Assembly: GCA_002269645.1 (NCBI GenBank)
Contig: NIVC01001665.1
Span: 62,001-126,000 of the forward strand
DNA: 64,000 nt
Direction of reading: 5' to 3'
From: Macrostomum lignano
Taxonomy: Eukaryota
The notes under the pieces were generated by a model. The model saw nothing but the letters and a program-made list of their open reading frames with translations, made no database searches and had not been told where the DNA came from. Position 1 is the first letter of the stretch, and each line of letters opens with the position of its first letter. The translations under genes were made by a program, and so were the position numbers. Of this stretch, positions 38,730-55,802 are shown in pieces.

Positions 38730-39210
38730 TTAAACCACGCAGTAGTTGAGCTCCTCAGCCTCCCCAGAGTCGCAGGCGGCAGCAGCCGCGGTCTCCAGCT
38801 CTGATTGCCGACTCACTCGTCGATGAGGACTCGGCTGCCCCGCTGTCGCTGTAGCCGCTGGCGCCGACGCAAGCGGCAGCATCCTGGCGAGCCTGTGCTC
38901 GATGCTGGCAAACGCCGGCCGGTCCTCGGGCGCCCAGCGCCAGCAGTCGAGCAGCAGGTCGCGCAGCTCAGCTGTACACCAGTCGTTCAGCGGCACCAGT
39001 CGCTCACCCGATTTCAGTCGAGCCAGCAGCTGCTGCGATGTCAAACTGCAGTTGCCAGGCAGTTGATCAAACGGCAGCCGACGGCCTCGGTTGAACAGCT
39101 CCCAGCAGGTGACGCCGAAGCTCCAGACATCGGAGCGACAGGTGAATCGGGCGTGCTGCAGCGCTTCTGGTGCGTGCCACAGGTGCGGCGGTGCAGCGTC
39201 AGCGGATCGC
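38730..39210 (-). CDS. Syk-like gene exon 4 (kinase subdomains VIII-XI + tail)
   Basis: Acceptor GTATCCAG|G gives [39 protein letters not shown]..., in frame with ORF 38730-39044. Confidence 0.88.
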
Positions 39211-54200: not shown

Positions 54201-55802
54201 TCAAACCAAGCCTCAAATGAAAATGGCGCCCCTATCAAATGAGATGGCGCCCAACTATCAAATGAAAATGGCGCCCCTATCAAATGAGATGGCGCCCAAC
54301 TATCAAATGAAAATGGCGCCCCTATCAAATGAGATGGCGCCCAACTATCAAATGAAAATGGCAAACCACCCATCAAATGAAAATGGCACCCACCCATCAA
54401 ATGAAAATGGCACCCACCCATCAAATGAAAATGGCACCCACCCATCAAATGAAAATGGCACCCACCCATCAAATGAAAATGGCGCCCACCCATCAAATGA
54501 AATGGCACCCACCCATCAAATGAAAATGGCGCCCACCCATCAAATGAAAATGGCACCCACCCATCAAATGAGATGGCACCCACCCATCAAATGAGATGGC
54601 AACCTAACAGTACATCAACCCACTGCATCTGCAGCCCTCACTGTCTCACTCTATCACTCTCTCACTCCCGCTCTCACCTCGAGCCCGCTGAGAAATTCCC
54701 AGTCGTTGGCGACCTCAGACTCGGCCTTGGCCAGCTCTGCAGCAGCCTCAGCGGCAGCCGCGCCAGCATTAGCCGTGACCGGACGTCGCAAACGGCACAT
54801 GAGACCATCGCGTCTCAGGTGATAATAGTCGATGAGCTCGACTAGAGTTCGAAAGCCTCGGTTGGCGCCTTCGATAGCGAGCCAATCCGGTCTAGATTTC
54901 CAAGCCAGTATTCGATAATGCCACGCCTCCCGCCGCCAGCTCAGAGTGAGCACGAATTCCGACTGCGACGTCCTTTGAGGAGTTGAACTACTCGACTCGT
55001 CGTCAACTTGTTGTTGCCGTCGTTGGCGGACAAGAAAATCGCCGGACACGTGTCCGCCTGAGGCCAGACGCCGTTCGGCCTCGGCCCGGTCGAGGCAGTC
55101 CTCGTGATACCAGGGCCGGCGGCGATGGAGACCGGCCAGTAGGTCCTCCCCGGCTGACCAAGTCAGCTCGTCCGCGGTGACGCCCTGAGCTAAGACCAGC
55201 GGCGACGTGCCCGAAGGTCTCGGACAGGGCACCCTGGCCAGTTTCACCATGGTCGGGTGACCTCGAATCAGTTCAACCGGGCCGGGGAAAGTCGCATCAA
55301 ATCCGTTGCTATGGCGACTAGACGCCAGACGATAGCCGTTAGTTTCGGCGGCTCGCACAATCGGGTAATGCGATACGGACGAACCCGAGCGGGAATCCAG
55401 CGCGCTCACGGCAAAGTTGCCGTCAAGACAGGACCGAAGCAGAAACAGGCCGTCCGGTTTTTCGTAGCTATAATCATCCGCCGAAGTCATCATTAGCAGC
55501 CGCTCCTCGGCTAATTCTGGCGTCATGAGCCCGTGAAAATAGGCCTCATTAGACGGATCAATGGGACCAGTAGTGCCTTGATGATGCTTGACTCGTGCAT
55601 GACATTGTAGCTGGTCTTTGTCCTGCACTGAAATAGGCCGATTGATTGCTTGCTGAGGTCCCTGCTTCTGCTGCTGCTGCACGTACGGGTTAACAGCAAT
55701 GGTCTTTGTAGATTTCTCAGGACACTGGCCAAGCACATCGATGGCGGTCATTGAAAAACTCGCACTGGCTTGTAGGCGACCGTTGACACAGCTGAACTTC
55801 AT
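38730..55802 (-). CDS. Syk/ZAP-70-family tandem-SH2 tyrosine-kinase-like protein, predicted pseudokinase; exons 55802-54678, 43010-42358, 41693-41481, 39210-38730 (823 aa if no further exons)
   Basis: Two SH2 domains ([22 protein letters not shown]; [36 protein letters not shown]) without intervening ankyrin repeats. Kinase subdomains [74 protein letters not shown]. All three introns are GT-AG with matching phases (0, 2, 2). Confidence 0.88.
39415..41376 (+). repeat. 20-bp minisatellite (CCCACCAAGAGACAGGGG[C/T]G), ~98 units, in intron 3 of the Syk-like gene, ending in a hAT-MITE-like terminus
   Basis: Direct units with occasional 21-bp variants; ends AGGGTGCGCACCCCTG (41361-41376). Confidence 0.97.
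41481..41693 (-). CDS. Syk-like gene exon 3 (kinase subdomains VIa-VII)
   Basis: Acceptor TTCCGCAG|C; [38 protein letters not shown]...KISGDFGLF; donor AG|GTATGC, phase 2. Confidence 0.9.
41790..42243 (+). repeat. Two degenerate 24-bp minisatellites in intron 2 of the Syk-like gene
   Basis: TAGGGGATTCCCTTGTGTCTTGAA-type units followed by CTAGAGCTGGGAATTGCCTCGTGT-type units. Confidence 0.88.
42358..43010 (-). CDS. Syk-like gene exon 2 (Pro/Ser-rich linker + kinase subdomains I-V)
   Basis: Acceptor TGTCTAACAG|CGC; open frame [10 protein letters not shown]...[10 protein letters not shown]; donor CC|GTGAGT, phase 2. Confidence 0.87.
43011..45455 (+). repeat. 20-bp minisatellite (GACACTCCTGTCTAACAGGT), ~120 units, abutting the exon-2 acceptor of the Syk-like gene
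   Basis: Direct units. Variant blocks repeat at a 659-bp offset (CTCCTGTATAAC at 43702/44361). The right ~450 bp is perfectly homogeneous. Confidence 0.97.
46990..47400 (+). repeat. Degenerate (GGTAGATT[G/A])n low-complexity repeat
   Basis: Recurrent GTAGATTGGTG motifs. Confidence 0.75.
48403..49635 (+). repeat. 20/21-bp minisatellite (CTGAAGCTCATATGGT[T]CCCC)
   Basis: Direct units; the GGGGGTTCCCGTGAAG variant recurs at ~48591 and ~49262, indicating block duplication. Confidence 0.95.
50300..52132 (+). repeat. CT-rich (CCCTCTCTA)n tract followed by a ~1.5-kb (GACA)n array
   Basis: CT tract 50300-50590; GACA array 50598-52132 with GGCA/CACA/GCCA variants. Confidence 0.96.
52490..53617. repeat. 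(GACA)n array (52908-53459) bracketed by inverted copies of a 32-bp CT/GA repeat
   Basis: Left arm CCCTCTCTACCCTCTCTCCCCCTCAACCCCTT (~52600-52727); right arm GAAGGGATTGAGGGGGAGAGAGGGTAGAGAGG (53460-53617) is its reverse complement. Confidence 0.88.
54170..54600 (+). repeat. 12-bp (CAAACCAAGCCT) and 21-23-bp (CAAATGAAAATGGC[G/A]CCC....) minisatellites near the start of Syk-like intron 1
   Basis: Direct tandem units. Confidence 0.9.
54678..55802 (-). CDS. Syk-like gene exon 1 (tandem SH2 domains)
   Basis: ORF 54654-55802; donor CTCGAG|GTGAGA (intron starts 54677), phase 0. Confidence 0.9.

Follow-up and report, generated by a model that had tools for sequence, protein, structure and literature searches.

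A Syk-family gene of the flatworm Macrostomum lignano with tandem SH2 domains and an apparently dead kinase domain

Introduction

The vertebrate tyrosine kinases SYK and ZAP-70 are active enzymes that bind immunoreceptor tyrosine-based activation motifs (ITAMs) in their doubly phosphorylated form and are regulated by interdomain-A/B docking together with tyrosines in the linker and the activation loop. Interdomain A of these kinases, a helical brace of approximately 55-60 amino acids (aa), spaces both SH2 domains for binding of bis-phosphorylated ITAMs and also docks on the kinase domain in the autoinhibited state, an autoinhibition that the linker tyrosines release. The invertebrate Syk-related kinases Drosophila Shark and Hydra HTK16, which are catalytically intact, carry two SH2 domains with ankyrin repeats between them. 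In flatworms, the schistosome Syk, SmTK4, has been shown to possess kinase activity and a role in gametogenesis, signals to proliferation and differentiation of the gonads, and binds the Src-type kinases SmTK3 and SmTK6 through its tandem SH2 (PMC2820527). Here we describe a gene, hereafter the window gene, found in a stretch of 64,000 nucleotides from the flatworm Macrostomum lignano (assembly GCA_002269645.1, contig NIVC01001665.1, positions 62,001 to 126,000 of the forward strand; "the window" denotes this whole stretch), which belongs to the Syk family by descent while encoding a kinase-like domain that has very likely lost catalysis.

Approximately one tenth of animal kinases are pseudokinases, their usual origin being duplication followed by catalytic loss, and by the standard sequence definition such a protein has a kinase fold without at least one of the beta3 Lys, the HRD Asp and the DFG Asp. 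The pseudokinase domains of JAK JH2, HER3/ErbB3, EphB6/EphA10, PTK7, ROR and RYK follow one logic, in which the kinase fold is kept after loss of catalytic residues and used for scaffolding or allostery; they are ancient, occur in many animals, and are either receptors or second domains beside an active one. Within the Syk family, engineered kinase-dead or SH2-only dominant negatives of ZAP-70 and Syk block lymphocyte signaling by occupying phospho-ITAMs. Reviews of tyrosine pseudokinases name only receptor types and JAK JH2 (PMC7586955, PMC13259870). A preliminary description of the locus, made without database searches, knew of no described Syk-family pseudokinase, and literature searches, whose coverage did not extend to the main pseudokinase catalogue, found none either.

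The window protein shares its architecture, and a place in the same flatworm SH2 clade, with the active M. lignano Syk, SmTK4, Clonorchis SYK (P0022) and the Heterobilharzia Syk (P0010). However, VAVK, the alphaC Glu, HRDLAARN, KISDFG, the YY pair of the activation loop and WPLKWY, all present in the active flatworm Syks, are gone from the window protein, which further departs from them in its shorter interdomain A, its low-complexity inserts, its extended N-terminus and tail, and the presence of one more intron in its gene. In both SH2 domains it has the betaB5 Arg and betaD His in common with vertebrate SYK and ZAP-70, from which it differs in lacking the catalytic residues and the regulatory tyrosines and in having an interdomain A about half as long. 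In contrast to JAK JH2, HER3 and their like, the window gene is a cytoplasmic Syk paralogue, seen in one species so far, with two SH2 domains as its sole other modules, and while two SH2 domains are likewise common to Shark and HTK16, no ankyrin repeats were found in the window gene. The engineered ZAP-70/Syk dominant negatives have the same composition, namely a tandem SH2 without catalytic output; they are, however, laboratory mutants with a single K-to-R/A change in a protein that is native in all else, whereas the window gene is natural, highly diverged and altered in its inter-SH2 geometry.

Loss of catalytic residues

Residues are numbered on the 813-aa form of the window protein, and lesions were read from its alignment to ZAP-70 (2ozo), SYK and 20 active Syk-family kinases. 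In the kinase-like domain, Arg512 takes the place of the beta3 Lys (VAIKVL to VAARVL), Cys613 that of the HRD Asp (HRDLAARN to HRCLSARN), and an extra Gly631 stands directly before DFG (KISDFG to KISGDFG). The alphaC Glu is without a counterpart; in ungapped register the position nine residues ahead of the HPN His is Ala, against Glu in the active M. lignano paralogue. Residue-level alignment bears out every one of these lesions, all of which had been listed in the preliminary description, as well as the motifs there reported as preserved, that is, the Gly loop (GSGRFG), DFG, APE and the subdomain IX-XI motifs DVWSFG and CW..RP. Comparison of conserved columns and alignment further reveal that the tyrosine pair of the activation loop is replaced by Asp-Val, and that WPLKWY, an instance of the WPxKWY substrate/P+1 motif, reads PPHLWH.

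In an alignment of 20 active Syk-family sequences, 83 kinase columns show conservation of 90% or more; of these, the window protein retains 59 (71%) and has lost 24. Included among the lost columns are the beta3 Lys together with a second Lys three positions further on, the alphaC Glu with two of its neighbors, the HRD Asp and the Ala that follows it, both tyrosines of the activation-loop YY, and three residues of WPxKWY (W, K and Y). The losses are distributed non-randomly, clustering in elements of catalysis and substrate binding and sparing those that define the fold, with HR..ARN and GxxP kept in addition to the motifs named above.

As had been proposed, the protein counts as a pseudokinase under the usual definition by sequence, given that two of the three catalytic residues (beta3 Lys and HRD Asp) are gone, together with the alphaC Glu, while the DFG Asp is kept. 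In a reconstructed ancestral kinase of the Syk family, mutation of the HRD Asp to Asn leaves the enzyme inactive (PMC9601881). Judged by these residues, it is very likely that the window protein transfers no phosphate. Because the beta3 Lys, alphaC Glu and HRD Asp have all been lost, the window gene is a member of the Syk family by descent, and very likely not an active kinase of that family.

Family membership and the active paralogue

The assignment to the Syk/ZAP-70 type of tandem-SH2 proteins stands on architecture, phylogeny and a shared intron position. Pfam recognizes a PK_Tyr_Ser-Thr domain (1.7e-46) and SH2 in two stretches, with no other domains; the order N-SH2, C-SH2, linker and tyrosine kinase, without an SH3 domain or membrane anchor, is collinear with that of ZAP-70, SYK and the active paralogue. 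Among the strongest matches in a sequence search of the PDB were ZAP-70 (1.7e-46) and SYK (3e-41), both collinear over the C-SH2 and kinase domains.

An active paralogue, for which the preliminary description had suggested a search, is present in the same genome. This protein, Mlig002125g1 (P0006, 723 aa), with copies Mlig016767g2 and Mlig033062g1 (P0006/P0153), has a complete set of catalytic motifs (GGGNFGEV, VAVKTL, EARVM, HRDLAARN, KISDFG, SDYYRA and WPLKWYSPE), and an exhaustive HMMER search identified it as the closest protein outside the window gene's own cluster. The two are 45% identical over 651 aligned residues and 50% identical over the HMMER-matched stretches. In a neighbor-joining tree of the tandem SH2 domains the window protein is sister to M. 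lignano Syk (bootstrap 97/100), inside a clade with the Clonorchis and Heterobilharzia Syks. The kinase-domain tree, another check proposed at the outset, gives the same sister relationship (bootstrap 68/100), with a dead kinase branch that, as judged by eye from the drawing of the tree, exceeds the active one in length by roughly a factor of three. Both genes have a phase-2 intron between HP and ECP with near-identical flanking bases, and both proteins possess rare motifs in common, including the N-terminal MKF..NPYV as well as kinase motifs. On the strength of the trees, the shared intron and the shared rare motifs, the window gene is taken to be a Macrostomum-lineage-specific duplicate of the flatworm, SmTK4-type Syk whose origin postdates the divergence from the trematode lineage and whose subsequent evolution was rapid. 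A second schistosome "SYK" (Smp_027400, PMC3135232) was considered as a possible orthologue; the SH2 tree groups the window gene with M. lignano Syk rather than on a separate deep branch.

Gene model and transcript

The spliced open reading frame (ORF), rebuilt by three-frame translation and splice-site inspection, has GT-AG junctions of compatible phase throughout (Table 1), and in the window copy its 813 codons are free of defects. The frame of 823 codons given in the preliminary description is exact if the acceptor at 43010 is used, which enumeration of acceptors identified as an in-frame alternative adding 10 codons to exon 2; the GenBank model derived from RNA-seq uses the acceptor at 42980, however, and so arrives at 813 aa. 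A cluster look-up showed the 813-aa product to be identical to P0156, that is, GenBank PAA65310.1 (BOX15_Mlig027271g1), a "hypothetical protein" in GenBank that carries the automatic name "Tyrosine-protein kinase" in UniProt. It is therefore essentially certain that the locus is the M. lignano gene Mlig027271.g1. The GenBank models of this assembly derive from genome-guided RNA-seq assembly using StringTie, TACO and TBONE (PMC5730564), and the model thus lends indirect weight to the transcription of the gene and to its splice junctions, that at the 42980 acceptor among them. Full-text literature look-up and the supplements of M. lignano transcriptome papers yielded no mention of Mlig027271, Mlig032448 or Mlig002125.

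Table 1. Positions, within the window, of the window gene, its principal motifs and the flanking genes
Feature	Position	Strand	Remarks
Coding exon 1	55802-54678	-	start ATG 55800-55802; donor GTGAGA; N-terminus same as PAA65310.1; disordered N-terminus, N-SH2, short interdomain A, C-SH2, beginning of interdomain B
N-SH2 (aa 87-196)	55215-55544	-	betaB5 Arg123 (55434-55436) and betaD His145 kept; alphaA Arg replaced by Pro95
C-SH2 (aa 230-342)	54777-55115	-	alphaA Arg239, betaB5 Arg259 (55026-55028) and His295 kept; ZAP-70 C-SH2 match 8e-9
Intron 1	42981-54677	-	11.7 kb; 20-bp satellites and (CAGA)n microsatellites
Coding exon 2	42980-42358 (alternative acceptor 43010)	-	interdomain B and kinase N-lobe; donor GTGAGT after CC, phase 2
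Gly loop GSGRFG	42630-42647	-	kept
Arg512 for beta3 Lys	42570-42572	-	CGG; AAG in active paralogue
Degenerate alphaC	42504-42533	-	
Coding exon 3	41693-41481	-	alphaD-alphaE, catalytic loop, early activation segment
Cys613 for HRD Asp	41603-41605	-	TGC; GAC in active paralogue
Extra Gly631	41549-41551	-	GGC; DFG at 41540-41548
Asp-Val for activation-loop YY	41483-41488	-	
Intron 3	39211-41480	-	nearly all 20-bp satellite (39420-41369, 97 copies); absent from active paralogue
Coding exon 4	39210-38730	-	PPHLWHAPE (later activation segment), subdomains IX-XI, Ala/Pro/Ser-rich tail; stop TAA 38730-38732
DHH/DHHA2 gene (prune-like phosphoesterase), upstream flank	57576-60504	-	
MAPEG-family gene, downstream flank	36849-37724	+	opposite strand

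Additional coding exons, for instance ones encoding ankyrin repeats as in Shark, were sought in intron 1, where only satellite-derived ORFs were found. Satellite arrays crowd the introns and flanks of the gene (38449-38723, 39420-41369, 43026-45457, 48403-49638, 50598-52131, 52908-53463 and 56333-57389), one of them beginning 7 nt past the stop codon. They consist of 20-bp units in 62-122 copies and of (CAGA)n/(AGAC)n arrays that reach 383 copies, and they account for the many long spurious ORFs across the locus.

The SH2 module, the linkers and the predicted fold

The phosphotyrosine-binding Arg was said at the outset to persist in both SH2 domains, and it does: the betaB5 Arg lies in GLFLLR in the N-SH2 and in GDFLVR in the C-SH2. 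An alignment of the Syk family shows that all pocket residues invariant in the family are present (Arg123, His145, Arg239, Arg259 and His295). Binding of phosphotyrosine by the SH2 domains of the window protein is, judging from these residues, plausible.

The AlphaFold model used was built with a 23-sequence family alignment, a single-sequence model (predicted local distance difference test, pLDDT, of 36) having been discarded. In the model, both SH2 domains and the kinase core reach a pLDDT of 70-93, with approximately 70-90 for the N-SH2 and 85-90 for the C-SH2 outside an insert in its BC loop, while the N-terminus, this insert, interdomain B, the activation loop and the tail are predicted to be disordered. 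The top PDB matches found by Foldseek were full-length ZAP-70 (2ozo) and SYK (4fl2), at approximately 1e-31, and the kinase domain matched SYK kinase-domain entries (e.g., 4dfn, 4rx7 and 3tub) with target-normalized template modeling (TM) scores of 0.80-0.83. The predicted arrangement of the domains does not superpose on that of SYK/ZAP-70 (global root-mean-square deviation ~19 A).

Features through which SYK and ZAP-70 are regulated appear to be missing. In the 813-aa form there is no Tyr in interdomain B and, with the activation-loop YY also gone, the Syk regulatory tyrosines are absent; interdomain A is represented in the AlphaFold model by three short helices only (pLDDT 59-75). With a shortened interdomain A and no linker tyrosines, the window protein probably conserves neither Syk-style autoinhibition nor the strict geometry of binding to doubly phosphorylated ITAMs.

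Genomic copies and the reality of the lesions

Two further loci in GCA_002269645.1 carry the gene, L001 (Mlig032448g1) and L002 (Mlig032448g2). All three have the same neighbors, with a DHH/DHHA2 gene on the upstream side and a MAPEG gene on the downstream side, and this common order of three genes indicates segmental or chromosome-scale duplication. The sequenced DV1 line of M. lignano carries extensive recent large-scale duplication (PMC5730564), which the three-locus pattern fits. Between copies, exons are approximately 98-100% identical and introns approximately 84-94%.

The lesion codons CGG and TGC and the inserted GGC are identical in all three loci; each of the two substitutions lies two nucleotide changes from the AAG or GAC of the active paralogue, and the GGC is a clean insertion of three nucleotides. 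Since the same codons occur in three loci and stand two changes from the active ones, sequencing or assembly error is excluded as their source.

In exon 4 of L002 (L002 23998-24472), 3 kb from the contig end, there are five deletions of 1-2 bases in G runs and no substitutions, and apart from these probable assembly indels the kinase exons of L002 and the window copy are identical. The frameshift in the corresponding model, P0155 (PAA50471.1), was considered as a sign of decay and rejected, as homopolymer deletions near a contig end are probably errors of long-read assembly. Two UniRef models from the older ML2 assembly, P0002 and P0003, join the SH2 exon to the DHHA2 gene that lies upstream, in what looks like a merge made by gene prediction and not a genuine fusion protein.

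Selection and constraint

Recent substitutions were tallied over all three copies for the dead gene and between two copies for the active paralogue. In the SH2 half of the dead gene, 4 non-synonymous changes were observed against 12 synonymous ones, a ratio of non-synonymous to synonymous rates (omega) of 0.11 (P = 3e-5 for omega <1), and this half is clearly under purifying selection. The linker (5 non-synonymous, 1 synonymous; omega ~1.7) and the kinase half (6 and 4; omega ~0.5, counting a stop codon in L001 and with all changes on the L001 branch) gave no significant result. For the gene overall, omega is 0.28 (P = 3e-4). The active paralogue has an omega of 0.29 in its SH2 half (4 non-synonymous, 5 synonymous) and of 0.10 in its kinase (2 and 7); for the kinase, values of 0.5 and 0.1 are inseparable because the substitution counts are too small.

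Over a longer span, comparison with the paralogue reveals 33 indel events, every one in frame, of which the kinase domain accounts for 11, and the 813 codons stay open. Neutral decay throughout most of the history of the gene would hardly have left only in-frame indels and an open frame at 45% identity. Together with the 59 of 83 conserved sites that persist, the 11 in-frame indels and the open frame support, at the level of sequence, long-term retention of the dead kinase domain. The preliminary description had likewise argued that the intact frame speaks against decay, which holds for the window copy and fails for the L001 copy with its premature stop; the window gene is not a dead processed pseudogene, and its intact frame, its GT-AG junctions and the whole-gene omega tell against a non-functional one.

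Proposed function and competing explanations

We consider it probable, though well short of assured, that the window gene is a Macrostomum-lineage Syk duplicate turned pseudokinase, acting most likely as a non-catalytic phosphotyrosine-binding adaptor or competitor. The adaptor or competitor role is a hypothesis that draws on analogy with SmTK4: the SH2 domains of the dead paralogue would bind phosphosites created by Src-type kinases, the upstream partners of SmTK4, and the docked protein could then compete with active Syk, dampening its output, or could instead recruit other partners by means of its kinase-like domain, which is rigid, and its linker and tail, which are long and disordered. 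Its two SH2 domains may act more independently of one another. A more far-reaching version, that this is the first natural Syk-family pseudokinase, retained with working SH2 readers, modulating active-Syk signaling and using its kinase-like domain as a binding platform, is put forward tentatively and seems to us on balance doubtful; competition for Src-phosphorylated docking sites in the germline or stem cells of a regenerating flatworm would be one example.

Several observations weigh against this adaptor or competitor role and against retention of the dead domain. Binding of phosphotyrosine is only assumed, because the alphaA Arg of the N-SH2 is lost to Pro, a 16-aa low-complexity insert rich in Gln and Ser interrupts the BC loop of the C-SH2, which binds phosphate, and interdomain A is, by alignment, 22 aa shorter than in the active paralogue. 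The loss of these ~22 aa weakens in particular the idea of an ITAM decoy, as the shortened element sets the geometry of bivalent ITAM binding in Syk/ZAP-70. For the kinase half, constraint in recent time could not be demonstrated (omega ~0.5, not significant). In copy L001 the CW(R)W motif of subdomain XI has undergone a genuine change of TGG to TAG (L001 22150-22152, corresponding to the TGG at window 38940-38942), which cuts off the last ~70 residues; this may be a copy-specific loss permitted by three-fold redundancy. Finally, no orthologue outside M. lignano emerged from the exhaustive HMMER search, in which relatives more than 50% identical are hidden within one cluster, and long-term conservation across species is for that reason unproven. 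Other homologue searches returned at most the M. lignano copies and carry no weight on this point, as they missed the 45%-identical paralogue even with that protein included in the query profile.

In a rival account only the SH2 half is functional, the gene encoding a tandem-SH2 adaptor whose kinase-like half is a dispensable remnant drifting to loss. The disparity in omega between the two halves, which is reversed in the active paralogue with its kinase omega of 0.10, suggests as much, as do the truncation of the L001 kinase beside an intact SH2 exon and the long branch of the dead kinase. Set against this are the 11 in-frame kinase indels and approximately 290 codons that have stayed open despite 54% divergence from the paralogue, the specific survival of the fold-defining positions among the conserved kinase sites, the identity of the kinase exons in L002 and the window copy apart from probable assembly indels, and substitution counts that are too small to tell an omega of 0.5 from one of 0.1; we regard such an account as unlikely, if a serious contender. 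A further, improbable account is that the whole gene is a redundant duplicate turning pseudogene, transcribed without function. Extensive recent duplication in the DV1 line (PMC5730564), three copies of which one has a premature stop, long branches, low-complexity inserts, satellite-filled introns and the lack of a visible orthologue elsewhere all fit a pseudogene. However, both the SH2 half and the gene overall are under purifying selection, exons are far better conserved than introns between copies, and survival of the 813-codon frame and canonical junctions through ~55% protein divergence and 33 in-frame indels would be very improbable under neutrality.

Some pseudokinases defined by sequence retain weak activity, and the window protein might be an atypical active kinase that compensates for its missing residues, as do WNK or CASK. 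The Gly loop, the Asn of the catalytic loop, the DFG Asp and the Arg of the HRD loop are kept, which would fit such a kinase, but no Lys has been relocated to the Gly loop, the beta3 Lys, alphaC Glu, HRD Asp and WPxKWY/P+1 motif are lost together, the activation-loop tyrosines are gone too, and mutation of the HRD Asp inactivates a Syk-family kinase (PMC9601881); we therefore hold residual catalysis to be very improbable. An artefact of assembly, sequencing or gene prediction has precedents at these loci in the false frameshifted model P0155, produced by the G-run deletions of L002, and in the fused DHHA2 models, and is nevertheless effectively refuted by the identity of the lesion codons at three loci and the clean frame of the window copy.

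Significance

The principle of duplication followed by catalytic loss is not new; the interest of the case lies in the Syk family, hitherto regarded as catalytic throughout. A dead kinase in a naturally occurring tandem-SH2 protein would be a counterpart, made by evolution, of the dominant-negative constructs with which ITAM signaling has been dissected. RNA interference and transgenesis both work in M. lignano (PMC5730564), and with an intact paralogue present in so tractable an animal, the role of a kinase-like domain without catalysis is directly testable. The limits of the case are that it concerns one species so far and that the evidence for selection on the dead domain is incomplete. As regards annotation, the automatic name "Tyrosine-protein kinase" is better read as "Syk-like pseudokinase", and tallies of the M. 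lignano kinome should leave these three loci out of the active tyrosine kinases.

A further tandem-SH2 Syk-like protein came to light in a JGI/IMG metagenome contig (P0141, 854 aa), with HQNIALRK in place of HRDLAARN and DFK in place of DFG. From its motifs, this could be an independent Syk-family pseudokinase of another eukaryote, with similar losses having occurred elsewhere.

Other features of the window

Two further features were noted in the window. An uninterrupted ORF of 1079 aa at 11696-14935 (+) resembles a hAT-type transposase (Pfam Dimer_Tnp_hAT 1.4e-9, DUF4371 2.4e-9) and bears, in its N-terminal part, a peptide repeated in tandem, (AASAAALDVGGAPDNP)n; this could be a hAT element that was active recently or one that has been domesticated. 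At 21491-22570 (-) and 30085-31143 (-), approximately 8.6 kb apart, lie two near-identical genes for fibrinogen-C-domain (FReD) proteins (Fibrinogen_C 1.3e-27), a pair that is a local tandem duplication.

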